Part shown: in pieces, positions 6,036 to 47,600 of the stretch
Layout of the letters: each line of letters opens with the position of its first letter
Numbering within the stretch: the first letter of the stretch is position 1
Origin: Mytilus californianus
Taxonomy: Eukaryota
Assembly: GCF_021869535.1 (NCBI RefSeq)
Contig: NW_026262723.1
Location: 87,358,001 to 87,422,000 of the forward strand
Direction of reading: 5' to 3'
DNA: 64,000 nucleotides
The notes under the pieces: model-generated
Seen by the model: the letters and a program-made list of their open reading frames with translations, nothing else
Told to the model about the DNA's origin: nothing
Databases searched by the model: none
Made by a program: the position numbers and the translations under genes

Positions 6036-7520
6036 TCATTCTTTATAGAAATGATAAAACATTATAAAGCATTCAAAATGATAGAAAATTACAAACGGAA
6101 CCCAGAAATGCTTAAATTTCAGCCAAGTGGTACTGTCAAACAGCGGTTGATTAATAAAACCCTCGTACGGAACATACATAAATGTATACGAAAACCAAGT
6201 GCTGAAATTTACAAAACACATCACAAGAAAGATGTTTCGGATTGATAATACAGAATTGGAACTGCTAAACTTTCGGTATTGCTTCATCTGTAGAATAAAA
6301 GTTGTCTGTAAAATCGTGACGGTAACTCTAACAACTGTATTAAGATGGATTCTGATGTCATTACGAAATATCCCGAGACTTTCAAGAATGTAGTAACCAC
6401 AAGTAGCAAGAGATGTTGAAAGGATAATAAAATGTTGAATGTTGATTATTTTCCGTGGCCTTTCCTTTGGTTGTAGTTCTCCAGCTAATGCATGATAACA
6501 TTTGATTGTGAGTGGTATTCGCAAAATGTTTCCGAAAAGATAGTATGCACTGGGTGCACCAGCTTGGTTAAACTTTGTTATGTACATTAAAATGCACTGG
6601 ATCATAATGAAGGATAAAAAAAACAATATAACAAGTCCGACTATACACTTTGATTTCCTATTCATTGGTGTATGCCTGTTAAGAACTGCTATATTTCTCG
6701 ATAAAAGCGGATAATTTTCTCCATTGTCTTGAGAAAGGGAAGTAGAATCAAATAAATGCATGTTGTCAAGTGACACGTACTGCTTTGGCCACATTTGAGA
6801 AATGAATATCAAACTTAACAGACAATATTCAAGCAACACCGGATCCAGAAATGGTTTTAGTATCCTTCCTGCTTTATACAGAGTTGTGGCGTTATTGCAT
6901 AGGTGTCCAGAGTTATTCAAAATGTCTTTTATGTCTTCAAAGTACAAGTCTAAATTGTTACGTGTCCACAAAGAAATGTTTGCAACAAACAAAAACATCA
7001 GTATATAATAAAAACACCTAATATTTGCAAATCTGAATCGTGAAAAATAAACAATGAATATGGTTTGTCCGAGATCGAAAAGCCAAGTAATTATATAGTA
7101 AATTGATTTCTGTGATAATGACTCACGTACATTGCATTGGATATGAAGAGCTAATTTCATCGCCTGTGATACTATATTTCCGAAGCAAAAGAGCCACAGA
7201 AACGCTAATTTCAGTCTGTCAGTAACTTTTCGTCTATGAAAAACCTTCCAATCGCTTTTTATGTGAACTAGAAAGCTACAAGTGATTAAGATACATATGG
7301 CAAAAGCTAGTAATCCAACCATCACCCATCTAGAATCTTTGGTTGGAAATATCAACATCACTTCAAGAACCGCTATAACTAGAGTCGTCAATAGCACTAG
7401 ACCGGATATACTTGCATCATGAACCGAAAATCTGCCATTTTCACGCTTTGTCACTAGTCCTGCTGTAAAAGGCATTACCAATGCAGCATGTATAATCCTT
7501 CGTAGCATATCTAGCATCAT
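6036..7520 (-). CDS. Otopetrin-family (OtopLc-like) 12-TM channel, copy 1; single coding exon, 494 aa
   Basis: Twelve hydrophobic segments with a two-fold internal repeat: QTIFI (TM4)/QTTFI (TM10), ANISLW (TM5)/VNFSTW (TM11), PVLLEYCLL..QMWP (TM6)/PFVIFYHFE (TM12). Uninterrupted ORF. Acceptor ttcttacag lies 7 nt before the ATG. Confidence 0.9.
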   Translation of the reverse strand: MMLDMLRRIIHAALVMPFTAGLVTKRENGRFSVHDASISGLVLLTTLVIAVLEVMLIFPTKDSRWVMVGLLAFAICILITCSFLVHIKSDWKVFHRRKVTDRLKLAFLWLFCFGNIVSQAMKLALHIQCNVRESLSQKSIYYIITWLFDLGQTIFIVYFSRFRFANIRCFYYILMFLFVANISLWTRNNLDLYFEDIKDILNNSGHLCNNATTLYKAGRILKPFLDPVLLEYCLLSLIFISQMWPKQYVSLDNMHLFDSTSLSQDNGENYPLLSRNIAVLNRHTPMNRKSKCIVGLVILFFLSFIMIQCILMYITKFNQAGAPSAYYLFGNILRIPLTIKCYHALAGELQPKERPRKIINIQHFIILSTSLATCGYYILESLGIFRNDIRIHLNTVVRVTVTILQTTFILQMKQYRKFSSSNSVLSIRNIFLVMCFVNFSTWFSYTFMYVPYEGFINQPLFDSTTWLKFKHFWVPFVIFYHFECFIMFYHFYKE

Positions 7521-10500
7521 TGTGTGTCTGTAAGAAATTAATCATTCAATTTACTATTCGCATGTTCACTTAAGTTGCTGTACAAATTTACAATGCATGA
7601 GAATCCGCAGTAGACTGAAATTTCCTCCGCTGGATTTTTAACATATGAAAGCTTTCATTCGGTGAAATGTGATTCTGCTAATCGAAACCGAGAATATTAA
7701 AGGTCTACAGATGAAGGTACACATGCATGTCGCTATGCATATTCTTCCTTTTTTCGGAAAATATAGAATTTAAACAACAACAAAAAGAAGTAAATTATGA
7801 TAGAAAGTATTTGTTTTCTGTAATCATTTCCTTATTTTTCAACACCATATTGTTTTTTTTTTTTTCTCATTTTCTGTTATAACGAAACTGTATTGTTAGT
7901 ATTAAGTGCTGTAGTTTAATTTCGAACTGATAATAGACAACAAATTTCAAAGGAATTATTTCCTCGTCACGTTTCTCATACAGTATACTTAAACTGTGGA
8001 TGTTGTGAGTTGTCCGTTTGTAAACAGCCTCCAAAGTCTTCCAAAGAATCTGGCAGAATATTTTAAACTCAAATGAGCCTTTATTATATCATGTTTATAA
8101 TGTTACCCAGCAATTACGTGGAGGTTTTGTTCCAAAAATCAAAATTTTATTCTCCAAAGTGACATTTTAGAAAACAAAGTACTTTTTTCTAAAGAAAACG
8201 ATTACTTTCTGTTTCAACAAAGAAGCTAAATGAAAGTTAAAATACATTTTGGAAAAATTGTCTTTTTAATGATGAGAATTTGATTAATGGAAATAAGTTA
8301 AGAACTTACAGAAAATTTAAAGTGAAGTACGAACTTGAAAATCATCTTTTAATGAATTTAGATTAAAAATGATATAAAAAAATATCCCAAAATATCCCAA
8401 AATAAGAAGAAACAGCAAGCTATCTATTTAACGTGGTAGATACATTAAAACAGCTTTAGAAAATAGATTGCGTCCCCTATGGAATATAGAGGTGGAAGAG
8501 AAATGCAATTTTTGACATTGTTCCTAGTTTAATTTCAATGACTAATTGAAAAAAAAAAATTTTGTGAGGAATATGATTATTATAATGCCATAAGTAAAAT
8601 GTATAATTACAGAAATAATATTAACATATATTCATGAACTGTGTATTTTACATGTATGGATTTATATGACTATATTTTTCTCTTTCGAATAACCTAATAT
8701 ATAAATGAACATATGATAAAGGTAAGCAGGATTTTTCTTCATTTTTCATAACAGTTCTTAATGTAATAATTGTTATGCTAATTTGAGGAGAGGCATGTTG
8801 TGTAGCAATTAAGAAAAAAAACAAACAAACAAACAAACTTAGATTTTTTTGTCAATGTTTCATATTTGTATTGTTTATTTGTATTTTGTGCTACATGTGT
8901 ATTTTGTAACAATCTCATTGTTTGGATTTAATACTAATAAATTTTTTATATCTTATATACAGTAGATACATCATTTTCATATTGTAAGTGTTCCGATCGA
9001 TTGTTCGAATTCAAATATTTTTGTTGCCTGATTTCGGAAGACGATGAAAATCAATACATATATGTTTTCTAAATTTCTGTGTACTTAATGTGATTGAAAA
9101 TTACATAACACTTTTCTTTGCATTTAAATGCAATTTAAAAAAATAAAAACACTAGGCAAAGTTTTGTCACAAATTAATGTTCAAATTTGAAATATAATAA
9201 ACTTTTATTTCTTTAAATTTAGTATTTACTAATGAGTCTTATGTAGCCCCTTATTGAAGATAACTTAAAACGCGCGCCTGGCGTAACAAATATTAGCCTT
9301 GTACCTTTGATGATTTTTTTTCTAAAATAAAAATAAAAATAAAAAGAAATGTATTACAAAATTTCGTATTGGTTATCATAAAACCTTATTGTACATTTAC
9401 TAGATGCTGTATATTTATATCAAAATCAAACATTCGACCTGAACATGCATGATATATTTGCCACTGGACGTTCAACAACCAACAACCAACAATCAACAAT
9501 CAATAAAACCAAACATTCTGAGGATATTGCATGTGCAACATGATGTCTCCTTTTAGCTATAACGTTAATATTGGATGAGTATACACTTATATGGGACAAG
9601 CATTTAAAAGTTTTTACTACTGTAGTTGGGACTTTTAATATCATGGTAAAATTGACCTCCGATGAATCCGGCTATATTTTATGCCCTTATTCTTCTTCGA
9701 GTGTTTTAGTCTTACACATCCTTGGCTTTTAAATGGTTTGGTTTGAGCGTTCCCGATGAAGGAAGATCCATAAAAGCGCTTCTGACGCACGAAAGTTAAA
9801 GTGTTTTTGGGTCAGACTGTTTTGGGTCAGACTGTTTATCAAAAAATACGGATACTATTTACAACTGCAGACCCAACGGAACCATTAGATCTTAAGGTTT
9901 TATTTCTCTAAAAGCTTACATTCTAAAGCAATTTTCTATATCCAATGACCACAATTCCTGCAAAAATTGCTCAAATCTATCTGTATCTCCTTTAGCTTAC
10001 TATACATCAAATGTTATATCCATTGATTCAGGCATTACAGAAAAAAGTGCGGAGAACTGATATTTTTCAAGGCATTTTTATATGTCAAAGTAAGAAAACT
10101 CTAGCAAATAATCCCTCAACCGGAACGAAACTCAAACTAACTTGATCTGAAACGTACTATGATAGTACATATACTGTACACCATATAGTAAACCATTTGG
10201 TTTAAGAATTGCAGCAAAAGTGAGCGGAAATTGATATTTTCAGGCAATTTTCTATATTTTAGGACCAAAACGTTCAAACAAACGCTAAAATCCTGAAGCT
10301 TAATAATAGTTATGGAAAGCAACCTACAAATGATTTGTAATAGTGAGGCCAACATAACATTATGGTATGAATTGCAAGAGTAATCTCAAAAAAAAATTAA
10401 ATTAAGGAATGCATCTCCCTCTTGAATGGCTTTTATTCCTTGTCCGTGTTCAGCTTTACATGGTCCTTTTTGGTTTTTCAAGTATTTTGGCTTTAGGCAT

Positions 10501-10614
10501 CACCGAAGAGACATTAGTTGTTGAAATGCGTATCTAGTCCAGTAAATTTGGTACCTTTTATGTTATTTCGATTTTAAGATTTTCTTCAATGTAATTTTCC
10601 AATTTGTATTAAGT

Positions 10615-10888
10615 ATAAATAAGAAGATGTGGTATGAGTGCCAACGAGAAAACTCTCCATCCAAGTCACAATGTATAAAAAGTTAACAATTATAGGTCAA
10701 AGTACGGCCTTCCGAACAGCAAGCTATAAAGGACCCTAAAATGACTAGTGTAAAACAATTCAAACAGAAAAACCAACGGTATAATCTTTATAAAAAACGA
10801 GAAACGAGAAACACTTATGAACCACACCAATAAACGACAACCACTGAACAACAGGCTCTTGACTTAGGACAAGTGCATAAAAATGCAA
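10615..10888 (+). repeat. Dispersed repeat family A, subtype B copy
   Basis: aagaagatgtggtatgagtgccaa..ctctccatccaagtcaca..tataggtcaaagtacggccttc matches 30774-31060 and the reverse complement of 49400-49727. Confidence 0.85.
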
Positions 10889-12819
10889 AAAGGACTACAT
10901 TTTGATCGATATGTTTCCATTGTTAAATACTAACACCCTCCTCATAACCTATCACAAAAAACTTACCGATATTTCGATATGCTGATAGTAACCAGTGCTT
11001 TCCTCTCTTTCGCACGATTAAATCAAAGCAGTTCAGACAAAGAAATAAAACAAGAAAATATTTTCCCTATTTTCTAATTAATTTTCTTAATTTTCAATTT
11101 AACAATGAACATGCTTCCTCGTTATAGCATCAATTACTATACCATAATAAAACAGTGGAAATATATTTGTTCTCTTGTTCTTATACGAGGAAATTAAGAG
11201 AGTATTACTTTCTTTTAAGTCTTTAATTTTCCTTATATAAATGATTAACAATTTTATTGTGAGTTTCAGGTCATCACATTCCTCTCTAGTCATCTTACTT
11301 TTATGTGCTCCGAATATTTTGAATGACACCAGTTTTATTTTATGAAGATAACATATTTAGTTAATTATATTCGACGCTTTTCTTTTGCTTAATAAACAAG
11401 TTCATGATCTAAATCCAATAAAACATTGAGTACACATGTTGGTTGTCACACTTGAATCTACAACGGCAATTATATTTTGATCGACGCTTGCAGATCAAAG
11501 TGTACATTTCTGTGGGTGTTACTCCTCATAAATTCAATTAAAAAAATTGAAAACGTAAGTCTATTCTTATTTAAAGAATATTTTACTGGTAAAGTGTTGT
11601 TTTTCCATAACATTTTTGCTCATTAAATCAAGACGGATACTGCAACTAGTTTAAATTCCTGTTTCCGGTTAGTTGAGCAAGAAAAGTACATTTTTCTTCT
11701 AGTTTTAATCAAAATCGTTAACAGGCGATTTTTGTACTTATTTGGCGTTTTTACTATATTTTTTTCATATGTAAACATGATCGTTATATGATTTATTGAT
11801 CAAAAGTTTCCCCTGGAACAAAAAATCGTTGCTCGCCTTGCTTCTTAAAACGCCATAGAACTTACCTGATATTTCTATCAATAATGGTCTATGTGATTCT
11901 TGATTTAATATAAATAACATTAAATTTGGGATATACGTATATAAGACAGAAAACTTTGTCGGAAAAAGAATAGTTTCTATTTCGAACTTCCGTATTCAGT
12001 CATGAAAGGTAATCAAATTTAAGTATACGAATGCTTTATACATTTGGAAGGTTTTGTGGCAAAAAAAAGAGTCGACCTCTACTAATAAGCTGTGATGGAT
12101 TAACTTATCACAGGATATCTTTCAGTAATGGATTTTATTAGGAATAACACGTGTGGTACTATTTGAGAAGGCACTACAAAGCCTTCCAGAGGACAGAGGT
12201 TCACCCCTAGTTTTTTGTTATTTTGGTTCGTGTTGAACAATCATCAGTGTTCTCTTTAGTGTTTTGTTGATTGGTGTTTGTTTGTTCGTCCTTTTTTTAT
12301 GGCCATAGCATTATCTCTCTTTTTTTTTACTATTGTTTTCTTTTAAATTATCTTTTGGAATATTGTTTTACTTTGCAAGGATATTAAGATATGGTTCGCC
12401 TTGAAGTAAATTAATATTCTTTTAACAAATTCACAAAATAGGGAATAGTTTTATTGTAAGTATGCTATCATGTATCGATTGACTGACTTTGAAAAAAACA
12501 ATCCTAAAAATAACTACTGTTTGGAAAAAATCTAGCTATTCTAACGGAATTGAAAGTGGCAAATGCTTCTACAAAATAACTTTAGAGGTCAGCACAAGAT
12601 ATTCAACAAAAGACAAGTGTTTGTACAATGTGCCAAGCACTTAACGAATCGAGTATAAAACTTTTTTTTTTATCTTATATTCTTATAAGAGTATCGTTAA
12701 TTTAAGATCACTTGTATTACACATATTACACTTATAGTAGGATATAAAACAAAGAAATTGCTTTTTAAAATAACAAAACATGTTGCAATTCACCAACAAT
12801 GCTCCTTTTTATTGATAGG

Positions 12820-13135
12820 AGCAATCGTCTAACCACAATCTCGTCTTCCTTTTCCCCAAATGTGACCTACCGAATTAGACTTATCTCCGGATTTGTACTT
12901 ACACGAGCAACTCGACGGGTGCCACATTTGTAGGATCTGTTTACCCTTCCGGAGCACTTGAAATCACCCCCGGTTTTGGTGGGGTTCGTGTTGCTCAGTC
13001 TTTTGTTTTCTATGTTGTGTTTTGTATATTGTTGTTTTGTCTTTTGGTCTTTTTCTCTTTTTTTGCCATGGCGTTGTCAGTTTATCTTCGACTTATGAGT
13101 TTGAATGCCCCTTTGGTAATTTTCGCCTCTCTTTT
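12820..13135. repeat. Dispersed repeat family C (ccttccggagcac...gttcgtgttgctcagtcttt...cgcctctctttt)
   Basis: A partial copy lies at 17590-17829 and a degenerate copy at about 12140-12360. Confidence 0.75.
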
Positions 13136-13495
13136 ACATTAAATCGCATTGGCTTGTGGTCCAGGTGAGCGAATCAGTTTTAACATTTCAATTATCCTTC
13201 CCGTAGTTTTGATTTTAGTAATATTTCCTTCCTTGTTTAGTTCCGCATATAAACAGGTGAGGTAAAGAACTTTGATTGGATAAATTAGCTACCGATTGTA
13301 TTATTATTTTCACTTCATTGACAGTGCGTCTTTTATATTTTTTTCAGTTGTTAGATCATAATTTAAAAAATATTTAAAGTTAACAAATGAATGTGTTTAG
13401 AAAGTTTATTTTTCGCTGTATCAGATTATTTTGGCAACAAAACAACAATAAAATGTGTTAGACTTCTTTAAAGTTCTATCCTCAGAAGGAAAAGA

Positions 13496-15127
13496 ATGAC
13501 ATTCTTTAAAGGAGTAATTCGAGCTGCATTTGTTCTACCGTTTTCGGCAGGTAATGTAGACGAGGGGAATGGTTCACATGATGGCAGCTTGTCTGGACTT
13601 TTACTGATGACCACTTCAATAGCTATCCTTTCTGAGATACTGATGATTGGATTTTCAACTAACGAGACTATTTCAACTAAATTCAGCGTTGGGTTAGCAG
13701 TCTTATCATTTCTATCTGCTCTAGCGATTGCACTTTGCGTGTGTATCAGTTTATACGTGTCATCTAGAGGGAACAGTGTGTTTCATGTTTTACCTTGGAA
13801 TAAATGTAATACAATAAGACTCAGGTTTTTGTGGATTTTTTGTTTCAGCTGTATTATTTCAAGAACATTGGACATGACCTTTTATATCGATTGTCTAACA
13901 AACTCAATGACCCTGAAATTTACAGTAGACACAATAGTGTATGATCTTGTCTGTATAGTATTTTACGTGGTGCAAACTGCATTCATTACATTTTTTTCGC
14001 ATTCGCGATTTACCAGCCACCTTGGTATTTATTATGGATTACTTATTATATTCCTGACAAATATTTCTGTAATATGTCATGCCTTGGCTTCTACTTTTAA
14101 ACCCATGGATAATGAAATTTTAAATTCGTCGACAATAAGCCACCATACTTCGAGTAATACTTCTTGCTTCAAGTCAAGTATGTACGAGGTATTGATGAAG
14201 ATTAATCCTTTCTTGTTACCGGCATTTTGTGAATATTCGCTTGTTTCGATTACATTTATTATGAATATGTGGCCTACATTTGGATTGAAAAGGGAAACGT
14301 TCGTGCTTGATGATATTTCGCTTGACGGAAACAAAGAAACGTCAGAGTCGACGAGCAATTTGAGAGGGTCGACAAATGAGAGGTCAGAATCGACAAATAG
14401 CAGGCGGAATAATGAGCGCATTCCTTTATTAGACAATACTGGAAACACAAGTAACAACCGACAACATCGTATAAGAAGATTTATAAGCATAACTGTTCCT
14501 ATTCTTCTAAATATGCCATCAGTAATATTATATTGTTTACAAATTTCGAAAGTACCATCTGTGCAGTTGGGCAAAACAATATCAATAGCTGTAGTAGCTA
14601 CTATTGAGTTGCTTTTGTATGTGAAATGCTTTTACTCTCTTCAGACTCAATGTAAACCTTTGAAACAAAGGGAATGTACCTCGCTTGATTCTAGTGATTA
14701 CATTTTAATTGCAAGTGTGGTTGCAGCAATTTCATATTCCACGGTAAAACTTATGTCAGATATTTACAATGTCAACTCTGAAACCACATATGCTATAGGT
14801 TTTTATAAACTGGTTATTGATATATTCGCTGCTTATTTCCAAACAGTTTTCATCCTACAAATGAAACAATATTCGAAGGCCTTTAATATATCCTCGTGGA
14901 CGTCTGTGGAATACACTTGTTTATTAATGTCTTTTGTGAATTTATGCTCATGGGCGGCTGATACTTTAATAGTTTCACAATATGTTTACAAAAATGACGC
15001 ACCATATCATTTCTTTGGGTCATCTGATTGGACAGAAATCTTTGGATTTTTATACCCATTTGTGATCTTTTACAGATTCAATGCTTTTGTATCCTTTTAT
15101 GGTTTGTATGACCGATTGAAAAATTAA
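13496..15127 (+). CDS. Otopetrin-family 12-TM channel, copy 2 (most divergent paralog); single coding exon, 543 aa
   Basis: QTAFI/QTVFI, TNIS/VNLCSW, PAFCEYSLVSITFIMNMWP (TM6) and YPFVIFYRFN (TM12, close to the otopetrin FYRFH motif). Acceptor ctatcctcag lies 10 nt before the ATG. Confidence 0.92.
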   Translation: MTFFKGVIRAAFVLPFSAGNVDEGNGSHDGSLSGLLLMTTSIAILSEILMIGFSTNETISTKFSVGLAVLSFLSALAIALCVCISLYVSSRGNSVFHVLPWNKCNTIRLRFLWIFCFSCIISRTLDMTFYIDCLTNSMTLKFTVDTIVYDLVCIVFYVVQTAFITFFSHSRFTSHLGIYYGLLIIFLTNISVICHALASTFKPMDNEILNSSTISHHTSSNTSCFKSSMYEVLMKINPFLLPAFCEYSLVSITFIMNMWPTFGLKRETFVLDDISLDGNKETSESTSNLRGSTNERSESTNSRRNNERIPLLDNTGNTSNNRQHRIRRFISITVPILLNMPSVILYCLQISKVPSVQLGKTISIAVVATIELLLYVKCFYSLQTQCKPLKQRECTSLDSSDYILIASVVAAISYSTVKLMSDIYNVNSETTYAIGFYKLVIDIFAAYFQTVFILQMKQYSKAFNISSWTSVEYTCLLMSFVNLCSWAADTLIVSQYVYKNDAPYHFFGSSDWTEIFGFLYPFVIFYRFNAFVSFYGLYDRLKN

Positions 15128-18633: not shown

Positions 18634-18719
18634 AGCACGTTATTAGCCCGGTATCTTTGATGCTCGAGTTTTTCATCCAATTTTTGGTACACTTCTACAC
18701 ATAATTTCAAATATTCACT

Positions 18720-20665: not shown

Positions 20666-21288
20666 GCTTGTTTCAACTCTTCATATTTGCCAGACCACCA
20701 TTGTAAGTCAAATAAGAGACATACTATAATACTATTCCTAGGCCAAACGCATTCGTTTTTTTTTTATATATGTTAACTCGTAAGAACCATGGTATATACT
20801 TATCCATAATTTTTTGAATTAGAAAATTACAACTTCTTAGGACAGGCACATGAAAATATGCATTAAATAAGTCGTACTGATATGATAAAAAAAAGTTAAT
20901 CTTTTTGCTTTTGTTAAATACAACCGAGAAACAAATCTTGATAGAAACGCAAGATCCACAAAACAATAATTTTCTTACTGTATTTAATTGCAGTAGTTGT
21001 CATATGTCATATTTTAATACTTTTCGTTTTTTGGAGAATTTGATTTCATGCATATTCAGGAAGAAAAACAAATAAAAACAAATAGGAGTCACTTACTATA
21101 GTTCTCGGCTAATTAGTACCTGATTTCCCATTGTTTAGGCTGAATGTATATATAACACAATTGCTAGCTTGGTGTTTGATAAATTGTTATTGTAAAGAAT
21201 TAATGCATCTCAGGGAAGAAAATCAAATTAACAAAAAATAAATGGGTAGCAATACTTCAAGTCATTTTATCTTAATTGCAGCAGAATA

Positions 21289-22794
21289 ATGACGAATCTA
21301 CTATGTAATATTTTGCGTGCTACTTTCATCGTTCCTTTTTCTGCTGGTCTCATTAAGGAGCGAAGAAATGGAGGATTTTCAATACATGACGGCAGTATTG
21401 CTGGAGTAGTTCTTTTGACAACAGCCATGATTATTATCTTTGAAATAATAGTTGTACTGCCAGTGAATCAGTCTCGCTTGTTGATGGTAGGACTTTCAGG
21501 TCTAGCGTTAATCTGTCTAGTGTTGTGTAGCATTGTAGTTCGATGCCGTTCTACCTGGGTCGAAGTTAAGACTGTGAAACCAAGCGATCAAATGAAACTA
21601 AAATTTCTCTGGTTATTTTGTATCGGGAATATCACGTATCAAGCCTTACAACTAGCAACGCATCTTCTATGTAAGATCTACAACCTCCAAGTCACACTGT
21701 TTTGGACGTTCACCTGGACATTTCAGATTTGTCAAACTGCTTTCATTCACTATTTTTCTAGATTTAAATTTGCAAATGTGTTGTGTTTGTATTACGGTTT
21801 ACTGGTTCTCTGTGTGACAAATATTTCAATGTGGACACAGCAAACTTTCTATACGAACAGAATTAGGCTCGAGATAAATATTAGCGACCTCATTAATAAT
21901 ACTATCTCAAACTGTTTATACGGCGATGGACTTGCAACAGCGGTTGGATTTTTGAATCCGTATCTGCAGCCTGTACTACTAGAATATTCTCTTCTAAGTT
22001 TAATCTTCCTTTCCGAAATGTGGCCAAAAAAGAATGCTGAATTTGAGACACTCAACAATTCTCTTTCAAGAAGCAGAGACGATGAAAACCAGACATTACT
22101 GGTAGAAAACGATGACCAAGATGGTGAACATCATCCATTATTGCCACGCTGTAGTGTCTGGCATAAAAATTCAGTATGTGTCCTGGTGATTGGATTTCTT
22201 TATAACTTCTCATTTATGCTAATTCAATGTATTTACATTTATGGACCGAGGGAAAAAATGACAGATTACAGGAAATTTTCCTTCGATGTCTTCTTTTGTG
22301 CTAATATAGTACGAACGCCGCTTATAATCAAATGCTTTTATGCCTTAAATGGACAACTAAGATCAAAACAAGAATCTCATACTGGAATGAGCTTAGATCA
22401 GTTTGTTATAATCACTAGTTCCTTTGCAACTTGTGGATTATATATTGCAGATTGTTTCAGATTGAGTGATTCACCAGCAAGTACCAATCTAGGAGAAATT
22501 CTGTTTAAAATCAATGTCGTCCTCCGAGTTGTTGCTACACTTTTTCAAACATTATTCATTTTGCAAATGAAACACTACAAAAAGATAGGAGACCAAAAGC
22601 CTTTTTGTTCAGTACAAAATACTTTTTTGTTTGTATCCTTGGTAAATCTTGGAATATGGATGTCTTACACTTTTGTTACTCCCAGATATCGTCTGACAAA
22701 ATCTAGCTTTTTATTGGAAAGTTTTTGGTTTCCATTTGTTTTATTTTATCATTTCGAATGTTTTGTCGCATTTTACAAGTTTTTTCGGGCATAA
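21289..22794 (+). CDS. Otopetrin-family 12-TM channel, copy 3; single coding exon, 501 aa
   Basis: QTAFI/QTLFI, TNISMW/VNLGIW, PVLLEYSLLSLIFLSEMWP and PFVLFYHFE. Acceptor ttaattgcag(cag) lies 7 (or 4) nt before the ATG. Confidence 0.92.
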   Translation: MTNLLCNILRATFIVPFSAGLIKERRNGGFSIHDGSIAGVVLLTTAMIIIFEIIVVLPVNQSRLLMVGLSGLALICLVLCSIVVRCRSTWVEVKTVKPSDQMKLKFLWLFCIGNITYQALQLATHLLCKIYNLQVTLFWTFTWTFQICQTAFIHYFSRFKFANVLCLYYGLLVLCVTNISMWTQQTFYTNRIRLEINISDLINNTISNCLYGDGLATAVGFLNPYLQPVLLEYSLLSLIFLSEMWPKKNAEFETLNNSLSRSRDDENQTLLVENDDQDGEHHPLLPRCSVWHKNSVCVLVIGFLYNFSFMLIQCIYIYGPREKMTDYRKFSFDVFFCANIVRTPLIIKCFYALNGQLRSKQESHTGMSLDQFVIITSSFATCGLYIADCFRLSDSPASTNLGEILFKINVVLRVVATLFQTLFILQMKHYKKIGDQKPFCSVQNTFLFVSLVNLGIWMSYTFVTPRYRLTKSSFLLESFWFPFVLFYHFECFVAFYKFFRA

Positions 22795-22810
22795 TTTTAT
22801 TATATATGTA

Positions 22811-33150: not shown

Positions 33151-34402
33151 TTATTTACTCATCTAAATACCGAGGTTTTGCCCACCCGGTGAATAATACT
33201 GTCAGTACTGCTGGGAGGGCGTTTCGTTTCGGAGGCTACCACCAGCCCAGATCAGCGCTTATTTGCGTGCATGAAACATAATTGATAGGTCATTTTCTGA
33301 AATTTACTATCTATACAATGTTAAAATTAATTGAAACACTTAGGATTTTCTTCCTCCAGCGAGAGGTTTTTGGTTTTCAATGCTCATCAACGTTATTATT
33401 GATTTGTCCCTCCAACTGTTTTATTCGAGCGCAAATGCTGATTCTCAATTAGTCGCATGCTCGTCTAGCGTACTGAATTATAAGGTTAGTATTTTTCATG
33501 AGTTTTTACTTGCAATAGCAGCAATGACAGCAATTACGTATTATCAAAGAGGCAGGGCAAAACTCTTCTGCATTTATTGCTCTCCTCGCAGTGTCAAATT
33601 AAAAAAAGATGTCAAATACATTTGTATTACTGGCAGTCGAATATCAAAGGGTATATATAATATACTTAAAACATTTGGCAACGACTTTTATTTATTTCAT
33701 CTAGTAAGACAAAATGTTTTGCGGTGATCGATGTATCTGTTGTTGCCATTTTGATACATTTTTTTCCAAATTTAACATGTGTTTTTTTTAAATATTTTGC
33801 ATCGAATGACGTCGCTAACCAAAATTATTTTAATTTGTATCCAGAAAACCATATATAGCATAAGTCTAACATATTTTGGTTTTGATTAAAAATATACTTA
33901 TACAAAGTTTGGATAAATAATCAAAAACTGTTAAAAAAATGTGACTTTCGGCTAATCTGCAGACGCCTATAATTTCGTTACCTGTTGTTAGAGCCTCAAA
34001 GAGCAAACAGCTGCGAATCTTTCAAATTAAGTAAAGGGTTGAAAGACTTTTTAAAAATGTCCTTTAAACATATTAAAGTTTGCTGCATATTGTTTAAATA
34101 ACCTAAAATAAATAGCATATCGAATCTGAAGATCTATCTTTGTATATCAAAAATCCTTAAATTATCTATTTTCTAATTGTATTTAATCGCAAAAAGAATT
34201 ACTTCTCTGTTGTCCCCGGCTTACACGTTACAACAATGATTGGGCTGCATACACATATAACGGTTGATTCTTGGTTGTTTAACTAATTTCCTATGTCAGA
34301 TATTTCATCCATATTTTGAAAGAGAAAAAAAAAAAACAAATTACAATTGATTCAATAGGTAGTTGTACTTTAAGCCACATATTTTATTTTACAGCAAATA
34401 TA

Positions 34403-35899
34403 ATGAATCAACTGTGCAAAATTTTGCGTGCTACATTCATCGTTCCGTTTTCTGCTGGTCTGATAAAGGAGCGACGAAATGTAGGATTTTCAGTACATGA
34501 CGGCAGTATTGCTGGAGTAGTTCTATTGACCACAGCCATGATCATCATATTTGAAACAATAGTTGTACTACCAGTGAATCAGTCTCGATTGCTGATGATA
34601 GGACTTGCAGGTCTGGCGTTAATCGGTCTAGTGATGTGCAGTGTTGCAGCTCGATGCCGTTCTAACTGGGTAGAAATAAAAATTGTAAAACCTAGCGATC
34701 AATTGAAACTAAAATTTCTGTGGTTGTTTTGTATCGGGAATATTATATATCAAGCATTGCAACTAGCGATGCACCTCGTCTGCAAGGTTTACAACTTCCA
34801 AGTCACACTATTTTGGGCGTTCACCTGGACATTTCAGATATGTCAAACTGTTTTCATTCACTATTTTTCTAGATTTGAATTTGCAAATGTTTTGTGTTTG
34901 TATTACGGTTTATTGGTTTTATTTGTGACAAATATTTCAATGTGGTCACAGCAAACTTTCTATACATACAGAATTAATCATGATATAAATATCAGCTATC
35001 TCATTAATAGCACAGTCTCAAACTGTTTATACGTTGATGGACTCTCTAAGGCAGTAGGATTTTTAAATCCGTATCTGCAACCGGTATTACTAGAATACTC
35101 TCTTCTAAGTTTGATATTTCTTTCCGAAATGTGGCCAAAAAAGAAGGTTGAATTTGAGACACTCAACATTTCCCTTTCAACAGACATAGACGATGAAAAT
35201 CAAACATTACTGGTACAAAATGATGACCTGGATAGTGAACAACACCCACTACTGCCGCGCTGTAGTGTCTGGCATAAAAATTCAGTACGTGTCCTAGTAA
35301 TTGGTTTACTATACAATTTCTCATTTATGCTAATTCAGTGTATTTACATATATGGACCGAGGGAAAAAATGACAGATTACAGATCATTTTCCAACATTGT
35401 CTTCTTTTGTGCTAATTTAGTACGAACGCCGCTAATAATCAAGTGTTTCTATGCATTGAACGGACAACTAAGACCAAAACAGGAAACTAATAGTGGGATG
35501 AGCTTAGATCAGTTTGTTATTATAACAAGTTCTTTCGCAACTTGTGGATATTATATTTTAGATTGTTTCGGTGATGCATATCCAAATTCAAAACCATTAG
35601 AAGTTCTGTTTCGAATTAATGCTGTCCTCCGTGTTTTTGCTACACTTTTTCAAACATTATTTATTTTGCAAATGAAACACTACAAAAAGATAGGAGACCA
35701 AAAGCCTTTTTGTTCAGTACAAAATACTTTTTTGTTTGTATCCTTGGTAAATCTTGGAATATGGATGTCTTACACTTTTGTTAATCCCAGATATCGTGTG
35801 AGACAATCTAATTTTTTATTGGAAAGTTTTTGGTTTCCATTTGTAATATTCTATCATTTCGAATGTTTTGTCGCATTTTACAAGTTCTTTCGAGCATAA
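34403..35899 (+). CDS. Otopetrin-family 12-TM channel, copy 4 (close paralog of copy 3); single coding exon, 498 aa
   Basis: Same motifs as copy 3. Start placed at ATG 34403 (MNQLCK), which aligns with the copy 3 start and follows acceptor attttacag by 8 nt. AATAAA at 35904. Confidence 0.92.
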   Translation: MNQLCKILRATFIVPFSAGLIKERRNVGFSVHDGSIAGVVLLTTAMIIIFETIVVLPVNQSRLLMIGLAGLALIGLVMCSVAARCRSNWVEIKIVKPSDQLKLKFLWLFCIGNIIYQALQLAMHLVCKVYNFQVTLFWAFTWTFQICQTVFIHYFSRFEFANVLCLYYGLLVLFVTNISMWSQQTFYTYRINHDINISYLINSTVSNCLYVDGLSKAVGFLNPYLQPVLLEYSLLSLIFLSEMWPKKKVEFETLNISLSTDIDDENQTLLVQNDDLDSEQHPLLPRCSVWHKNSVRVLVIGLLYNFSFMLIQCIYIYGPREKMTDYRSFSNIVFFCANLVRTPLIIKCFYALNGQLRPKQETNSGMSLDQFVIITSSFATCGYYILDCFGDAYPNSKPLEVLFRINAVLRVFATLFQTLFILQMKHYKKIGDQKPFCSVQNTFLFVSLVNLGIWMSYTFVNPRYRVRQSNFLLESFWFPFVIFYHFECFVAFYKFFRA

Positions 35900-36101
35900 T
35901 GAAAATAAACTTCGTATGAACTTGTAATGACAACACACGTACTTGCATTGACCGTTTTGTTATCGTTATAAAATTACCGAATTCTATGTTAATTGTATGC
36001 ATTAATTTTGTAGTTTGTTTTTAATAAGTTAAAAGGACAAAGTGCGATTATGGACGTTTGTTAGTCGTAATTTTTCACTGAGACATTACAGTATATATTA
36101 A

Positions 36102-37667: not shown

Positions 37668-39346
37668 GAATAGTGTCATTCGTTTCAAATTTTCCAGATG
37701 CAGTAACACTTTCAGACGGTGTTTCATAGTTATGGATTTTGAATGAAATATGTATTGCGTCTATTTTTGTCATCAAATTGATACCTTATCACTGGTTTTT
37801 TTTGACAATATGAATCCATGTACTGTCTTATCCTTTTCTGGTTTGGTTGCAAAAACCTGATTTTTTTTTCACATTTGAATGCTTAGTTACTTCGTCATTT
37901 TTTAAAGGGTCTGATTGCAAGATAAAAGTAGAGAAAGGTTGTTTTACCTTGCTTGGTGATACTGAAGTAACGAAATCTTTTCAGTAACTGAACTGAAAAA
38001 ACATTAAATGCTGCAAGAGGTATACTAGTGATTAAATTAGATGTAATATTTACTTTCAATTCGACATTTGAAAATATCATTAAAAGAAGGAGAATTGTTA
38101 AGATTTCCAATAAGACAACTATTCACCCAAGTCGAAAGGCAAAAAATTTGGAACAACTACATGCTACCGTTCGACCTTCAACAATGAGTTAACTCTTACC
38201 ATAAACTAATCTGTGAAAGGCCCCGGGATGACAAAGTGACAAATTAAAAAGAAAACGAACTGCCAGATTTAAACTTAAACTATAAAATATAAATGATAAA
38301 GAGCGCAACAAATGACATTCACCAGATAAGAGATTCCTTGGACAGGTACATAAAATATGTGGCGGCATTAAGCATGTTTGTGAGTAGTCATCATGGCTTG
38401 AGGTAATCGAGAAACACGGAGAAATTATGAATAGTGTCATTCATTTCAAATTTTCCAGATGCAGTAACACTTTCAGACGGTGTTTCATAGTTATGGATTT
38501 GGAATGAAATATGTATTGCGTCTATTTCTGTCATCAAATTGATACCTTATCACTGTTTTTATTTGACAATATGAATCCATGTACTGTCTTATCCTATTCT
38601 GGTTTAGTTGCCAAAACCTGATTTTTTTTCACATTTGAATGCTTAGTTACTACGTCATTTTTAAAGGGTCTGATTGCAAGATAAAAGTAGAGAAAGGTTG
38701 TTTTACCTTGCTTGGTGACACTGAAGTAACGAAATCTATTCAGTAACTGAACTGAAAAAAACATTAGAGGCTGCAAGAGGTATACTAGTGATTAAATAAG
38801 ATGTAATATTTAATTTCAATTCGACATTTGAAAATATCATTAATATAAGGAGATTTGTTTAGATTTCCAATAAGACAACTATCCACCTAAGTCGATAGGC
38901 CAAAAATTTGGAACAACTACTAGTACATGCTACCGTTCGACCTTCAACAATGAGTTAACTCTTACCATAAACTAATCTATGAAAGGTCCCGGGATGACAA
39001 AGTGACAAATTAGATAGAAAACGAACTGCCAGATTTAAACTTAAACTATAAAATATAAACGATAAAGAGCGCAACAAATGACATTCACCAGATAAGAGAT
39101 TCCTTGGACAGGTACATAAAATATGTGGCGGCATTAAGCATGTTTGTGAGTAGTCATCATAGCTTGAGGTAATGGAGAAACAGCACAAAATAAGAACGAA
39201 CTGTTAAAATCAGTTGAATAACACGACTCTATGACAGGTAAAATATTATCAAAAGTAAGTAAATCATCAAGGTAAAGGTAAGTATTGTGACGAATTGTTA
39301 GTTCCCTGCACTGGAACTTGTTTCCCCAAAAATTGTGTGTTGACAT
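37668..39346 (-). mobile_element. Degenerate Penelope-like RT remnant whose 3' part is tandemly duplicated (~760 bp unit: 37668-38428 and 38429-39182)
   Basis: Minus-strand YLDDLLTFDN (RT YxDD-like) near 39270, followed by decayed downstream segments. The direct repeat starts gaatagtgtcattc. The duplication is certain; the PLE call is tentative. Confidence 0.55.
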
Positions 39347-40041: not shown

Positions 40042-40228
40042 TTAGATACAATACAAAGGTAACAAAGAAACAGGCCGGTAACAAGCGTTGCCGGATAGTT
40101 TTTCTGCACGAGTAGTCAGGTGAAGGTCCGAGGCGATAGCCGAGGACCTTGACCTGACTACAAGTGCAGAAAAACTTTACGGCAGTTTGTTTCCGGCCTG
40201 TTTTTTGTTACCTTTGTATTGTATCTGA
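40042..40228. repeat. Near-perfect ~187 bp palindromic (foldback) element with a GC-GATA-GC apex
   Basis: The left arm agatacaatacaaaggtaacaaa...gtagtcaggtgaaggtcc pairs with the right arm. Centre: ggtcc-ga-ggc-gata-gcc-ga-ggacc. Confidence 0.9.
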
Positions 40229-42384: not shown

Positions 42385-42976
42385 ATAAACAACAACATCA
42401 ATATGGTTCTTTCTTCTATTACAATTTTAATAATTTTGACACCAGTCTTTAGTAAAGATTCTTATTCTACCATCAAAAAGTTGGGGTTTTTTTTTTGTGT
42501 GCTATATTTAGTATTTGTGATCTAAGATAAATTGACCTTAAAATCGATCTTATTATTCCTCTCATTGCATGTGATCATCTATTTTGTTTAGGTTCAAATC
42601 CAACGTAAGGTCCATTAGTAATCATTCGGAAACCCTCTTTCTGCACTTCTTTTCGTATCTGCAATTATCAACATAAGGTCGTCAACAACAACGAATTGTT
42701 TATAAACAATAACATCAATATGGTTCTTTCTTCAATTACAATTTTAATAATTTTGACACCAGTCTTTAGTTAAGATTCTTATTCTACCATCATTAAGTTG
42801 GGTTTTTTTTGTGTGCTATATTTAGTATTTGTGATCTAAGATATATTGACCTTAAAATCGATCTTATTATTCCTCTCATTGCATGTGACCATATATTTTG
42901 TTTTTGGTCCAAATCCAACGTAAGGTTCATTAGTTATCTTTCGGAAACCCTCTTTCTGCACTTCTTTTCGTATCTG
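42385..42976. repeat. Local direct duplication, ~275 bp unit (42385-42661 and 42702-42976)
   Basis: Both copies run from aacatcaatatggttctttcttc to cttcttttcgtatctg with few differences. Confidence 0.9.
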
Positions 42977-43546
42977 TAAACTTTACCTTTAATATATTTA
43001 CAACATACTCAATAAGGATATTTCTAGCATTTTATTTGATCATATATCCAAGTTTGGATCTAACTCCAAGTAAGGTAGCTAAGTCTCATCCGTTAACCCT
43101 TTTCTCAACTGATTTAGTTTTATTTTTAATATCTCTGATCTTTACCTTTACAATCGATAGAGACTTCCTCGCAATATGTATGTTTTACATTGCTTCTCTT
43201 ATATTTCAAAGGTCACGTCAGCGACCGGGGATATATTTGAGATGCCGTGTAATCAATCTGCATTTAGGTATTAAATAACCATTTGATCTTTTCTCTGGTA
43301 TTAAACTTTTTCTAACAGAAAAGCTATTTGTTTTGTTTTATAAAAAAATAAGAAGATAAGATAAGAATAGTGTCCGTATCAAAAATTCACATTATGTGAA
43401 GAAAAGCAGACGTTTTCTTTATCAAAAAGGAAGTATGTTTTGTAATGTCTACATGAAATGATTTTTAAAACGGACATATTTTCTAGCAAATTATGATTAT
43501 ATTTAAAGAATGTGTATTTATAATCTATCATTATTACTTTTCACTA

Positions 43547-44100
43547 CAACTATACGTCACCGTACGGCCTTCAAAAATTACCGAAACCCACACCGCATAG
43601 TCAGCTATAAAAGGCCCCGAAATAAAAAATGTAAAACAATTCAAACGAGAAAACTAATAACCTGATATATGTAAAAACAATGAACGAAATCAAATATGAT
43701 ATACAGCAAAAAACAACAACCATTGAATTACAGGCTCTTGACTTGGGACAGGCACATACAGAATGTGGCGAGGTTGAACATGTGAGCGGGCGCCCCCTAA
43801 CCTGGGACAGTGGCGTAACAGTAAAATATATGAAGAAACTATAAAATCAGTTGAAAAGGGCTTAACTTATCAGATCGATACAAAGCAGAAAAAACAAGTT
43901 ACAAAAACGCAGACCGGACGTGGCAGGGAGTTTATACATCCCTACAACAAGAAAGACAATACGTACAGATCTGAGAGAACTCGCAGCTACTGACAGCTAG
44001 TTCAAAGCCAATAACAACTAATAAAAAAATCATGTATCTAAGACTGAAGTATCAATCAGCACACATCCAACATCCAATTCATTTAGTGTAAAGACGTCAT
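43547..44100 (+). repeat. Dispersed repeat family A, long copy (5'-truncated)
   Basis: Colinear with 1858-2414. Confidence 0.85.
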
Positions 44101-46118
44101 TACAAAATGTCACATCCGGTGTCACCTGATAGGTAACTTCACACTTATTCTAAAGATTATATGGTTTCTTTTATATGAAATTAGTACAAAATTGAATTCT
44201 TCTGAGAAACACCAGGGCACTTCCGGTTATATTATGTCGTCCTATATTGCAAAAGACTTCATGGCTTATAGTGTACCAGTATGACGTTATAGCAAATATC
44301 AAAATCAAATGGCCTTTGATCTTGACTTCAATGTGAAGGACAAATGTTAAGGAACTCTAATCAAAAGCCTCCAAGTCTTATAAGTATGATTAAGAAGATA
44401 TCCTATACTAAACAGCTTAATTTGAATATTTAAGGGGAGAAAAATCATATAAAAAGTCACTAGAGCACTTCGACCCAAATCTATTGGTGTAACGTCAAGA
44501 CGAATGAACTGTTCAATATCATACACCAAATATGTAATCGACATGTTGCGAATCAAAAGCAACATTTTAGAAGCAAAAGTTGCGGAAGAAAAAAAATAAT
44601 AATCAGAACAAATTCAACAGGTCTTTGCACGGAAAAGTAAAAATAAAATAAACAATTCTACTCAATTCAATCATGGGTTTATACATCTATGATTCAATAA
44701 ACGACAGTTTTGTACATTGCACGTATTTTTTGAAAAGTCGTCGTGAGTTAAAATATTAAAAACTTCCTGTTTCGATTAATTTACAAGGAAACAATACAGA
44801 TAATGATGACTGAAGATCAAACTAAAAACGAAAATTCCCGTGAATCACAATAAAACAGGCAAAGAATACTAATCGCGCAGTGTATATCTCTACAGGTCTA
44901 ATAATAAAGAGTATACAGAACTAGGTTGAATTGAATCGACACGAAAGGTAGGAACTTAATGTATCATATTATCTGGATGAGTTACATAGTACGAGGAATA
45001 AATTAGAATTGTATTTCCTGTTTATTGTGATGATAAATGTTTAATGTATGGTATATCGTCTAAGAGTCTAGACATGGAAAGTATAATTAGAATAGGAAGA
45101 GGAGATTAATTTTCGGGTTCAATCCACTAACACGTAGTAACAGTTACCACAGTGTTATTTTACGATGACATAGTTTTGCTCATCACAAAAATTCTTTTAT
45201 TGTCAATTGAGTTTATCTGAAGTAACAATTTCAAAAATGTTTAGTTCTCAGAAATCTTTATGTCAATTCCCCGTTTCAAAATCTATTGCTTTCCGGTATA
45301 TATTTAAAAGCATACACCAAAACATTGTGTTGGTTATCAACATTCTTAAATAATGTAAAAAGTTAAAATTGCGTCACGTTATTTTATTTGCATTTTTGGT
45401 ATACAAACAAAACAACTCACCAAAGATACCAGGCTTATAATGTTGTACGCCTGATGCGTGTTTCGTCGACAATAGACTAATCAGTGACGCTCGAATGAAA
45501 AAAACTTGAAAGCAAAATAAAGTACGAAGTTGAAGAGCATTCAGAACCAAAATTTCGGAAAGGTTTTACCAAATACAGCTCTGTTAGTACTTGCAAACAT
45601 ACTCTGTTCCTGGAGTAGAAAATCCTTAGTATTAGTATTTCGATCAATGTTTTGTAATCTGTGAATAAACTCCTATAAATTTTGAAATTGTGAATTTGGA
45701 CAACACATCTGTTGTCACATTTCTGTTTCCAAATTCAAATTCTATCAAACTATTTCGGCAACCTGTCACTTCCATATACAAAAATATAGGCGTAAAACAC
45801 ATATTTTTATAATTTTTCTGCATTCGATGCATGTTTATGAATGAAAGAAACGAGAAGAATAACTAATATCATTTGAAGCGTTTCTTGTATGATTATTACA
45901 TTTTGCTTACTAAGACCAGTTTAGTATTATGAACAAATACAAGATGATTGATATCAGATCATTAAAACATTTAGTATTGCTGTCCTATAAATTAAGTACT
46001 GTGACTATCTATTTCAGGAAAGGAAAAATGGTTGAAATATTGACACCGTTTAATGGTCACCTCAATAACTAAATATCCGTTTTACATGATCAACTTCCAT
46101 CTTACAGCGAGATTTAAA

Positions 46119-47600
46119 ATGAGACAAAAATTGAAGAAAATCCTGCATGCTGCATTTGTTATGCCATGGACAACTGGTTTGATTAAAGAATATCGTAACG
46201 GTGACTTTTCCATTCATGACGGCAGCATTGCTGGAGTAGTTATTTTGACAACAATTATTATCATGATATTTGAACTCATGTGTTTCTTTCCTAAAACTAC
46301 TTCCCGGATAGTAATGACTGTTTTGTTGATCATTGCAGTTTTCACCTTGATTTCCCTAAGCCTTTCAGCTTGCAGGAATAAACACTGGACAGTGCCAAGA
46401 AGTTCAAAAGGCAGTCACAGTTTGAAATTGAAATTCCTTTGGCTATTTTGTGTAGCAAATATTACTTTCGAAATAGTGAAATTTGCAATTTATAGCAAAT
46501 GTGACCAACTTCCAGATGTTCTACTTTATTACATTTCAACTTGGATATTTCAAATTTTGCAAACATTCTTCCTTCATTACTTTTCCAAATTCATATTTAA
46601 TAATATATTGTGTCTTTATTATGGATTTCTTGTTCTTGTTGTCACAAACTTTTCACTGTGGACACATCGAACTATATTTACATATTATGAAGCCAAATCA
46701 TTTTTAAACATCAGTGACATAAGTGGAAATGTATGTAATGATACAAAATCGTTTGTTCCGATGAAACAATTTAAACCATTTTTAGATCCAGTGTCTTTAG
46801 AATACTGTCTGTTATGTGTGATACTCCTATCCGAGATGTGGCCGAGAGCAAAATATCCCGAACTTCAAAGTCGACAACTACAAGAGTCCTCTTCGAGGCA
46901 AGACACAGAAGAACATCAGTGGTTATTACGTTGCAATAGCAATGTTCCGACTAGAACAGTTTGGAATAGAAAATCCATTATAGTTTTAATTATTGGTATC
47001 TTGTATATGATTGTATTTATTGTTATTCAGACATTGTTTCTTAACATTGATCAACTGAGAAATAATTACTTGCACGTAGCTTTCGTATTTTATGTTTGTG
47101 GAAATTTCATTCGGATACCACTTACAATAAAGTGTTTTTACGCATTTTCTGCACAACTCCGTCCTAAATCAAATGCTCAAACGGTCACAGACATGAAACA
47201 TGTAATTATTTTAGTTAGTTCAATGGCTACCTGTGGATATATAATAGCAGAATGTGTAGAGAATCTTCGCTACGGTGAAGTAAAAATCATACTTAATGCC
47301 ATTTTCCGTGTGCTAAGCACTGTTATGCAAACTTCATTTATTTTACAAATGAAACAGTACAAACGAGTAGACAGGACAAACACTATTATGTCTGTACAGA
47401 ATACATTTTTATTCATGTGTTGCATAAACTTCAGTTTTTGGTTTTCATATACCTTTATATCACCACAGTATACTGTCAGATTGCAAAGACACTTTTTTGA
47501 AATTGCCAGCTGGCTAAAAATTAAACATTTCTGGTTCCCTTTTATTATATTTTACCACTTCGAGTGTTTTATCTCATTTTATGACTTCTTTAGAAAATAA
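46119..47600 (+). CDS. Otopetrin-family 12-TM channel, copy 5; single coding exon, 493 aa
   Basis: QTFFL/QTSFI, TNFSLW/INFSFW, PVSLEYCLL..SEMWP and PFIIFYHFE. Start placed at ATG 46119 (MRQKLKK) by paralog alignment, 11 nt after acceptor catcttacag. AATAAA at 47666. Confidence 0.92.
   Translation: MRQKLKKILHAAFVMPWTTGLIKEYRNGDFSIHDGSIAGVVILTTIIIMIFELMCFFPKTTSRIVMTVLLIIAVFTLISLSLSACRNKHWTVPRSSKGSHSLKLKFLWLFCVANITFEIVKFAIYSKCDQLPDVLLYYISTWIFQILQTFFLHYFSKFIFNNILCLYYGFLVLVVTNFSLWTHRTIFTYYEAKSFLNISDISGNVCNDTKSFVPMKQFKPFLDPVSLEYCLLCVILLSEMWPRAKYPELQSRQLQESSSRQDTEEHQWLLRCNSNVPTRTVWNRKSIIVLIIGILYMIVFIVIQTLFLNIDQLRNNYLHVAFVFYVCGNFIRIPLTIKCFYAFSAQLRPKSNAQTVTDMKHVIILVSSMATCGYIIAECVENLRYGEVKIILNAIFRVLSTVMQTSFILQMKQYKRVDRTNTIMSVQNTFLFMCCINFSFWFSYTFISPQYTVRLQRHFFEIASWLKIKHFWFPFIIFYHFECFISFYDFFRK

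Follow-up and report, generated by a model that had tools for sequence, protein, structure and literature searches.

A Mytilus californianus gene cluster from a large, probably separate and fast-evolving otopetrin subfamily

The stretch of Mytilus californianus DNA analysed here is a 64-kb segment (C143:87358001-87422000 of the 1.65-Gb assembly; hereafter the window), which carries five uninterrupted open reading frames (ORFs) for otopetrin-like proteins. These make up the greater part of a local cluster of six genes (five of them inside the window), probably drawn from a large, fast-evolving otopetrin subfamily that is separate from the canonical OTOP genes; we assign this reading a probability of about 0.75. 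Oysters, scallops and mussels have each undergone an expansion of the subfamily of their own (at least 38 intact copies in this mussel genome), and outside the bivalves its closest relatives are "OtopLc-like" proteins encoded by intron-poor genes in cnidarians, a hemichordate and a nemertean. The array itself would have arisen by local tandem duplication, as in the pairs ORF3/ORF4 and ORF1/L005 (the sixth local copy), with ORF2 as an older member of a different subfamily brought alongside.

Gene content of the window and its surroundings

Five ORFs of at least 250 amino acids (aa) were detected in the 64 kb, four on the plus strand and one on the minus strand, with protein lengths of 493-543 aa. 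No further ORF longer than 165 aa was present in the window, and none of the small intergenic ORFs of 109-165 aa matched a Pfam family. The window contains no N and has a GC content of 32% (range 28-35% throughout); open frames of some 500 codons in DNA of this composition are therefore not due to chance. The features are as follows, with the residues at the FYR box of transmembrane helix 12 (TM12) given for three of the genes.

6036..7520, minus strand: ORF1, otopetrin-like, 494 aa; uninterrupted ORF, corresponding to database protein P0007; TM12 FYHFE; no Pfam match alone
13496..15127, plus strand: ORF2, otopetrin-like, of the other subfamily, 543 aa; Pfam Otopetrin 79 bits; TM12 FYRFN
21289..22794, plus strand: ORF3, otopetrin-like, 501 aa; no Pfam match; corresponding to P0014 (100% identity); TM12 FYHFE
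34403..35899 (frame from 34316), plus strand: ORF4, otopetrin-like, 498 aa, young paralogue of ORF3; Pfam Otopetrin 52.5 bits
46119..47600 (frame from 46053), plus strand: ORF5, otopetrin-like, 493 aa; Pfam Otopetrin 66.5 bits
47868..48008, plus strand: pseudogene fragment of 47 aa, duplicated from part of the 3' end of ORF5, with 79% identity to residues 428-474 of the latter

The listed start of ORF4 is a TTG at 34316, and in ORF5 the first ATG lies upstream of the aligned start. The ATGs that align with the other copies are at 34403 and 46119, giving proteins of 498 and 493 aa, and these ATG-based lengths agree with the database proteins P0015 and P0001, respectively.

ORF2 to ORF5 align end to end with ORF1 at 31-46% identity. 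The closest pair within the window is ORF3 and ORF4 (approximately 85% aa identity), whose loci are 86% similar in nucleotide sequence. This similarity is limited to 21216-22795 versus 34329-35900, beginning 73 nucleotides before the ATG and ending at the stop codon; megablast detected none in the flanks, although the synonymous divergence (dS) is only 0.41. The sixth local copy, L005, is located 8.6 kb before the window (C143:87347872-87349356, minus strand) and is 90% identical to ORF1. Around the fragment behind ORF5, the family profile match (47835-48053) includes stop codons. The same duplicate of the ORF5 end is carried by a Logan contig (L054), which is collinear with 46039-48436 at 86% nucleotide identity and could equally represent DNA or unspliced RNA.

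The initial annotation had described a tandem array of five intact, single-exon genes. All five were recovered in place with uninterrupted frames, and their clustering is real, but the arrangement is not uniformly head-to-tail, since ORF1 lies on the minus strand. The count also needs amendment: with L005 outside the window the cluster comprises six genes, and a 47-aa fragment lies inside.

Assignment to the otopetrins

In searches with the Pfam Otopetrin model (PF03189; cut-off 27.8 bits), the matches of ORF2, ORF4 and ORF5 spanned only model positions 144-434, and ORF1 and ORF3, searched singly, gave no match. A family profile built from 36 M. californianus paralogues (see below) matched the OTOP2, OTOP3 and OTOP1 chains of the Protein Data Bank (PDB) with expect values (E) of 1e-20 to 5e-11, the alignments falling in TM1-6 and TM11-12. 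The AlphaFold model of the Pfam-negative ORF3 (mean local confidence score, pLDDT, 80; predicted template modelling score, pTM, 0.80) has 12 long helices besides a helix at the N-terminus and a small hairpin, and its TM6-7 loop is disordered. When this model was compared with the PDB by Foldseek, the top 12 matches were all otopetrins (probability 1.00; template modelling score by target 0.59-0.76), including mouse OTOP2, chicken and Xenopus OTOP3, zebrafish OTOP1 and Caenorhabditis elegans OTOP8. Beyond these the matches dropped sharply (E 0.1; template modelling score of about 0.2). A protein atlas look-up returned a mollusc Otopetrin cluster (0.95).

The otopetrin-like identity originally proposed is therefore upheld by Pfam (three of the five ORFs), by the family-profile matches to solved otopetrins and by the fold match, all of which agree, and the assignment is secure. 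The 12 TM helices that had been proposed are likewise seen in the predicted structure of ORF3.

With the vertebrate proteins OTOP1, OTOP2 and OTOP3 (PDB 6nf4, 8ug6, 6nf6 and 6o84) the window proteins share 12 TM helices in two six-helix barrels and the profile similarity over the two regions named above, as well as both Gln-Asn-Tyr triads, a buried Glu beside the TM6 Tyr and two Cys in extracellular loops. They differ from them in showing only 11-16% identity in structural alignments, in being encoded by a single coding exon rather than many, and in carrying an additional conserved N-terminal motif. Three further differences concern functional positions: FYR has become FYH in four window copies, the TM12 His (His669 of Xenopus OTOP3) has been replaced by Glu or Asn, and the TM9 Asp by His in ORF1 and ORF5.

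Copy number and distribution in the M. californianus genome

The whole genome was searched with the Pfam Otopetrin model and with the window-derived family profile, and two kinds of otopetrin gene were found. Canonical OTOP genes are multi-exon and match exon by exon, with 236-260 bits for the C-terminal half alone. They are located at C165:96599423-96606696 (at least four pieces), in a further tandem set extending to 96.69 Mb, and at C165:31.80 Mb and C35:17.85 Mb. The second kind consists of single-ORF copies with frames of 470-600 aa, which score 35-86 bits against Pfam. In the same genome the multi-exon genes lie well apart from the latter, in support of the divergent status that the initial annotation had given to its five genes.

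Between C165:96599423 and 96686653 four canonical multi-exon OTOP genes are arranged in tandem, and the last three C-terminal exons of this set have one or two in-frame stops inside the Pfam match. Some of these stop-bearing copies may be pseudogenes, or the Pfam match may cross an intron.

The family-profile search gave 63 matches. Among the loci fetched, at least 38 are intact ORFs of at least 460 aa from the first ATG, and at least ten copies are broken (stop codons or fragments). The intact copies are distributed over seven chromosome-scale contigs (C143, C1, C165, C24, C88, C35 and C110), mostly in clusters, and family fragments also occur on C120. By these numbers, the five genes do not constitute a novel family of their own. 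A pair of 543-aa otopetrin-like genes with nearly equal scores, L019 and L020 (C143:100187114-100188733 and 100192453-100194072), lies elsewhere on C143 with a spacing of 5.3 kb; they look like a very recent tandem duplicate within the ORF2 subfamily.

Phylogenetic position and subfamilies

When 1.84 billion cluster representatives were searched exhaustively with the profile, 1542 proteins reached E≤0.001, and 180 of these E≤1e-30. A FastTree tree of 171 rows was constructed from the 36 paralogues, 129 full-length top matches, three fish OTOP2 sequences and the C-terminal exons of three canonical mussel genes; it gives no position for gastropods, cephalopods, heterodont bivalves, arthropods or nematodes. 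The canonical mussel exons join fish OTOP2 (support 98), apart from the 165 other rows, which include the window copies. Within the latter, 151 rows form a bivalve clade (support 100) in three parts. Every one of the 36 M. californianus copies and every named Mytilus protein falls in the first; the named proteins of scallops (Mizuhopecten, Ylistrum) fall in the second, and those of oysters and pearl oysters (Crassostrea virginica, Ostrea edulis, Saccostrea, Pinctada) in the third. Outside the bivalve clade are a Hydra protein named "proton channel OtopLc" and proteins of the jellyfish Rhopilema, the nemertean Tubulanus and the hemichordate Saccoglossus.

Along this series the Pfam score is 166 bits in Hydra, 122 in Saccoglossus, about 92 or none in oysters, 46 in a scallop and 0-79 in the window, so that Hydra and oyster proteins can score far higher than the window copies. 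The mussel genes represent the fast-evolving end of a widespread otopetrin lineage.

The proteins of oysters, scallops, Hydra, Saccoglossus and Tubulanus, named automatically by NCBI as "OtopLc-like" or uncharacterized, belong to the same tree clade as the window copies, and their genes are similarly intron-poor or intronless. The bivalve relatives also possess the N-terminal P-x-x-x-G ... D-G-x-x-S motif, which is found in part in Tubulanus and Hydra. In contrast to the mussel copies, which form an expanded subclade of their own, the oyster and basal members mostly retain the FYR box and the TM12 His. It should be noted that "OtopLc-like" is an automatic name and that Drosophila OtopLc is not in the tree.

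The relationships among the 36 paralogues were analysed further with IQ-TREE, using four outgroups. ORF1, ORF3, ORF4 and ORF5 form a clade with L005 and with two copies at 62.1 Mb, L007 and L008 (support 100/100). ORF2 joins L012, L015 and L017 (56.7 Mb) and L019 (100.2 Mb) with support of 100/99, and the six local genes were monophyletic in 0% of the bootstrap trees. The five genes had been taken for one divergent clade; this is contradicted by the position of ORF2 in another subfamily. The cluster at C143:56.7 Mb (L012, L015, L017) is the sister group of ORF2 and resembles the window genes in family, in its uninterrupted coding regions and in the absence of the TM12 His (FYRFK). It differs in its location, in belonging to another subfamily than ORF1, ORF3, ORF4 and ORF5, and in carrying Lys at the position that Glu or Asn occupies in the window copies.

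Coding-exon structure and the origin of the array

The single-exon state is shared with other bivalves. Two oyster proteins (P0176 and P0160) and one scallop protein (P0081) are each encoded by exactly (length + 1) codons in a single exon, and single-exon members are present in C. virginica, O. edulis and Mizuhopecten yessoensis. In the nearest outgroups coding introns are few: in the Hydra member a single intron, near residue 283, divides the coding region into two exons, in the acorn worm Saccoglossus there are likewise two, separated near residue 472, and in the ribbon worm Tubulanus one exon holds all but the first residue. The intron-poor state therefore characterizes the subfamily as a whole and predates the three sampled pteriomorph lineages, and any retroposition is consequently ancient and not an event of the mussel lineage, where a retroposed ancestor had initially been placed. 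The window copies accordingly do not fit the picture of a recent processed retrogene, which would be an intronless copy derived within the lineage from an intron-bearing parent. A retroposition may lie at the root of the subfamily.

In M. yessoensis, three single-exon genes (530, 533 and 574 aa) lie in tandem on one strand (L053:405-11725), of which only the third (P0081) has been shown to be otopetrin-like. This suggests that the clustered arrangement recurs in scallops.

Tandem amplification, the route originally proposed for the array, holds as far as local duplication is concerned, which is real. It was not the sole route, since dispersal between loci also occurred.

Conserved motifs and functional residues

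Residues are numbered according to Xenopus OTOP3 (XtOTOP3), and their roles are taken from its mutagenesis (PMC6483595). In that protein the constriction triads are Q232/D262/Y322 in the N-pore and Q585/N623/Y666 in the C-pore; both triads, together with the buried interface residue Glu321, are needed for current, which is abolished in the mutants His669Ala and His669Gln (PMC6483595). In the five window ORFs these positions, and two others, are occupied as follows.

N-pore triad, Gln232, Asn (Asp262), Tyr322: conserved in 5/5
C-pore triad, Gln585, Asn623, Tyr666: conserved in 5/5
Glu321, buried interface Glu (L-E-Y motif): conserved in 5/5
Arg667, the R of the FYR box: Arg in ORF2; His in ORF1, ORF3, ORF4 and ORF5
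His669: Glu in ORF1, ORF3, ORF4 and ORF5; Asn in ORF2
Asp509, the TM9 acidic residue: conserved in ORF2, ORF3 and ORF4; His in ORF1 and ORF5

The five proteins would form dimeric two-barrel channels, and the retention of both triads and of the interface Glu in all of them makes a proton-conducting dimer the most likely form. Proton conduction as such is, on this residue evidence, about evenly balanced. A prediction of the ORF3 complex with two copies (500 residues each) returned no answer (score 0.00) and is evidence for neither side. The intracellular interface that controls gating would have been rebuilt by the changes from FYR to FYH (four copies), from TM12 His to Glu or Asn, and from TM9 Asp to His (two copies); with such an interface, gating, pH dependence or even the permeant species probably differ from those of OTOP1-3.

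The same pattern is apparent beyond the window. Within the mussel clade, 71-98% of the rows keep the pore-triad positions, and 80 of 87 keep Glu321. The R position of the FYR box is Arg in 45 mussel rows and His in 37. At the position of His669, the mussel clade has His in a single row out of 87 (Glu in 43, Lys in 34) and the scallops in none of 17, as opposed to 26 of 43 oyster and pearl-oyster rows and 10 of 18 basal rows. Loss of the TM12 His is accordingly typical of mussels and scallops rather than of bivalves as a whole.

Such a distribution, combined with the loss of current in both XtOTOP3 His669 mutants and with an N-terminal subfamily motif that fish OTOP2 lacks, might indicate that the fold was kept while the function was not, the proteins having become another kind of channel, a transporter, a receptor or a regulatory subunit after the His loss and the FYR change. 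We regard this as rather unlikely: the triads and Glu321 are retained in 80-98% of mussel rows, which would be difficult to account for had the pore function not been conserved, and the Glu or Lys at the His position remain titratable or charged. The idea of a swapped pair, with TM9 His and TM12 Glu standing for TM9 Asp and TM12 His, was rejected for want of consistent co-occurrence among the 36 paralogues.

The remaining sequence features of the initial annotation fared variously. The N-terminal signature (P-[FW]-x-[AT]-G, then HD-[GA]-S-[IL]-x-G) is present in the five-ORF alignment, as is the tail ending with TM12, and the Cys after TM3 and that in the TM5-6 loop are both invariant in the five. 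The two Cys are pan-otopetrin features, and the N-terminal motif (P-F-x-A-G ... D-G-S-I-S) is common to mussels, scallops and oysters, and partly to Tubulanus and Hydra. The TM1 Glu is also invariant in the window, but its conservation is confined to the window's own subclade. As for the N-glycosylation sequons, an invariant N-x-S stands in the TM5-6 loop, whereas the "NIS" at N181 of ORF1 lies within a helix, at the position of the constriction Asn of the N-pore, and is therefore unlikely to be a glycosylation site.

Selection, orthology and transcription

The ratio of non-synonymous to synonymous substitution rates (dN/dS) was determined for four comparisons.

ORF1 versus L005: dN/dS 0.26
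ORF3 versus ORF4: dN/dS 0.19
ORF1 or L005 versus the M. edulis orthologue: dN/dS 0.19-0.23
ORF2 versus the M. edulis orthologue (89% identical): dN/dS 0.21

The copies are under purifying selection. For each window gene, other mussels of the genus (M. edulis, M. trossulus, M. galloprovincialis, M. coruscus) have a close one-to-one orthologue, and the head-to-head pair of an ORF1-like and an ORF2-like gene has the same arrangement in M. edulis.

Transcription was assessed from reads and contigs mapped over 43000-48999. Contigs of two runs guessed to be RNA, with one or two mismatches, cover only 46021-47656. Those of one declared RNA-seq run cover only 46215-47624 at about 95% identity, and therefore probably derive from another Mytilus. 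No RNA contig extended into the unique flanks of ORF5, and no joints were found inside it. In a raw RNA run from the same organism, a few reads fell on ORF5 with the first mate on the minus strand. These observations are modest evidence that ORF5 is weakly transcribed as an unspliced coding region.

Intronless coding regions, and the many broken copies and fragments both in the genome and beside ORF5, might also be expected of decaying retrocopies, that is, of unexpressed or neutral processed pseudogenes whose frames are still open. This is highly improbable, given dN/dS values of 0.19-0.26 for paralogues as well as for orthologues shared with M. edulis, one-to-one orthologues in four other Mytilus species, five intact frames out of five in AT-rich DNA, and RNA contigs over ORF5. 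The pseudogene reading is therefore rejected on selection, orthology and intact frames.

Several repeats were observed in the same part of the window. The segments 43400-44199, 45400-45599 and 48600-48799 are high-copy repeats with a contig depth in the thousands-fold range and many RNA reads that match in part, at 90-95% identity and on both strands; these repeats flanking ORF5 are probably transcribed transposable-element families. A 1.93-kb unit occurs as a tandem pair (49095-51021 and 51023-52950; 99.6% identity), which is a very recent duplication or a satellite-like element. Another tandem pair, of a unit of about 750 bp with 94.8% identity, is located at 37668-39182.

Points weighing against a separate otopetrin subfamily

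A number of points count against the interpretation of the window as part of a distinct, functional otopetrin subfamily. This interpretation is based on sequence and predicted structure. The FYR box has been said to occur in every otopetrin family member (PMC2268672); ORF2 carries it, and ORF1, ORF3, ORF4 and ORF5, with FYH, do not. None of the five has the TM12 His, so that the known mode of proton conduction may be lost in them. The tree contains no arthropod OtopLa-c, nematode OTOPL or sea-urchin Otop2l sequences, and its parts are labelled by their named rows, most rows being without an organism name. The transcription data consist of low-depth contigs, two of the runs being merely guessed to be RNA, and of few raw reads, all for one gene. 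Finally, the M. edulis gene model P0004 takes six aa from an exon 4.5 kb upstream, and the window genes may have introns in their 5' untranslated regions or a tiny upstream coding exon.

Possible roles and significance

In terms of function, we lean towards environment-facing acid/base sensing or epithelial proton handling, which the size and divergence of the family would suit better than a single housekeeping role. A chemoreceptor-like repertoire is a tentative possibility. The proteins would act as detectors of acid, alkali or ammonium, one or a few per cell, in sensory epithelia such as the mantle edge, gill, labial palps and osphradium, and the expansion would reflect diversification of tuning. 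A large, clustered, lineage-specific expansion, with 17-46% identity between subfamilies and purifying selection within them, is consistent with such a role, as is low bulk expression, which fits genes used in few cells. OTOP1 and Drosophila OtopLA are acid-taste receptors (PMC8713817, PMC8211824). Against this, a low depth is equally expected of weakly used genes, and the sequences bear no mark of a sensory role.

A sea-urchin otopetrin has been reported to move protons in skeleton-forming cells. By analogy, the mussel proteins might belong to the calcification or acid-base machinery and serve proton export or import where the shell is formed, in the mantle or in the larval shell field. Expansion in three heavily calcifying bivalve lineages and the conserved pore triads would agree with this role, which is nevertheless improbable: transport has no obvious need for at least 38 divergent paralogues, and the canonical OTOPs of the same genome are equally good candidates.

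Otopetrins were recognised as proton channels only in 2018. To our knowledge, work on them has so far dealt with three genes of vertebrates, a few from flies and worms, and a single one from a sea urchin. Public records name the members of the present family "uncharacterized protein" or, recently, "proton channel OtopLc-like", and no description of a bivalve otopetrin expansion or of its intronless state was found in the open literature searched.

The window cluster is one instance of this family-level finding, its local particulars being two adjoining subfamilies, a sixth copy and a fragment. It is conceivable, though doubtful as yet, that mussels, and independently scallops, run a large repertoire of proteins with the otopetrin fold that lack the TM12 His and have an altered FYR box. 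If so, and if protons are conducted, the TM12 His would not be part of a universal mechanism of conduction or gating; if protons are not conducted, the otopetrin fold would have come to serve a new permeant species or to act as a receptor, within a bivalve gene family resembling those of chemoreceptors. The selectively maintained paralogues of a single mussel (at least 38) and the parallel expansions in oysters and scallops constitute a natural mutagenesis series, spanning debated residues such as the FYR box and the TM9 Asp/TM12 His pair. They also offer candidate genes through which calcifiers that face ocean acidification may sense acid-base conditions or handle protons.

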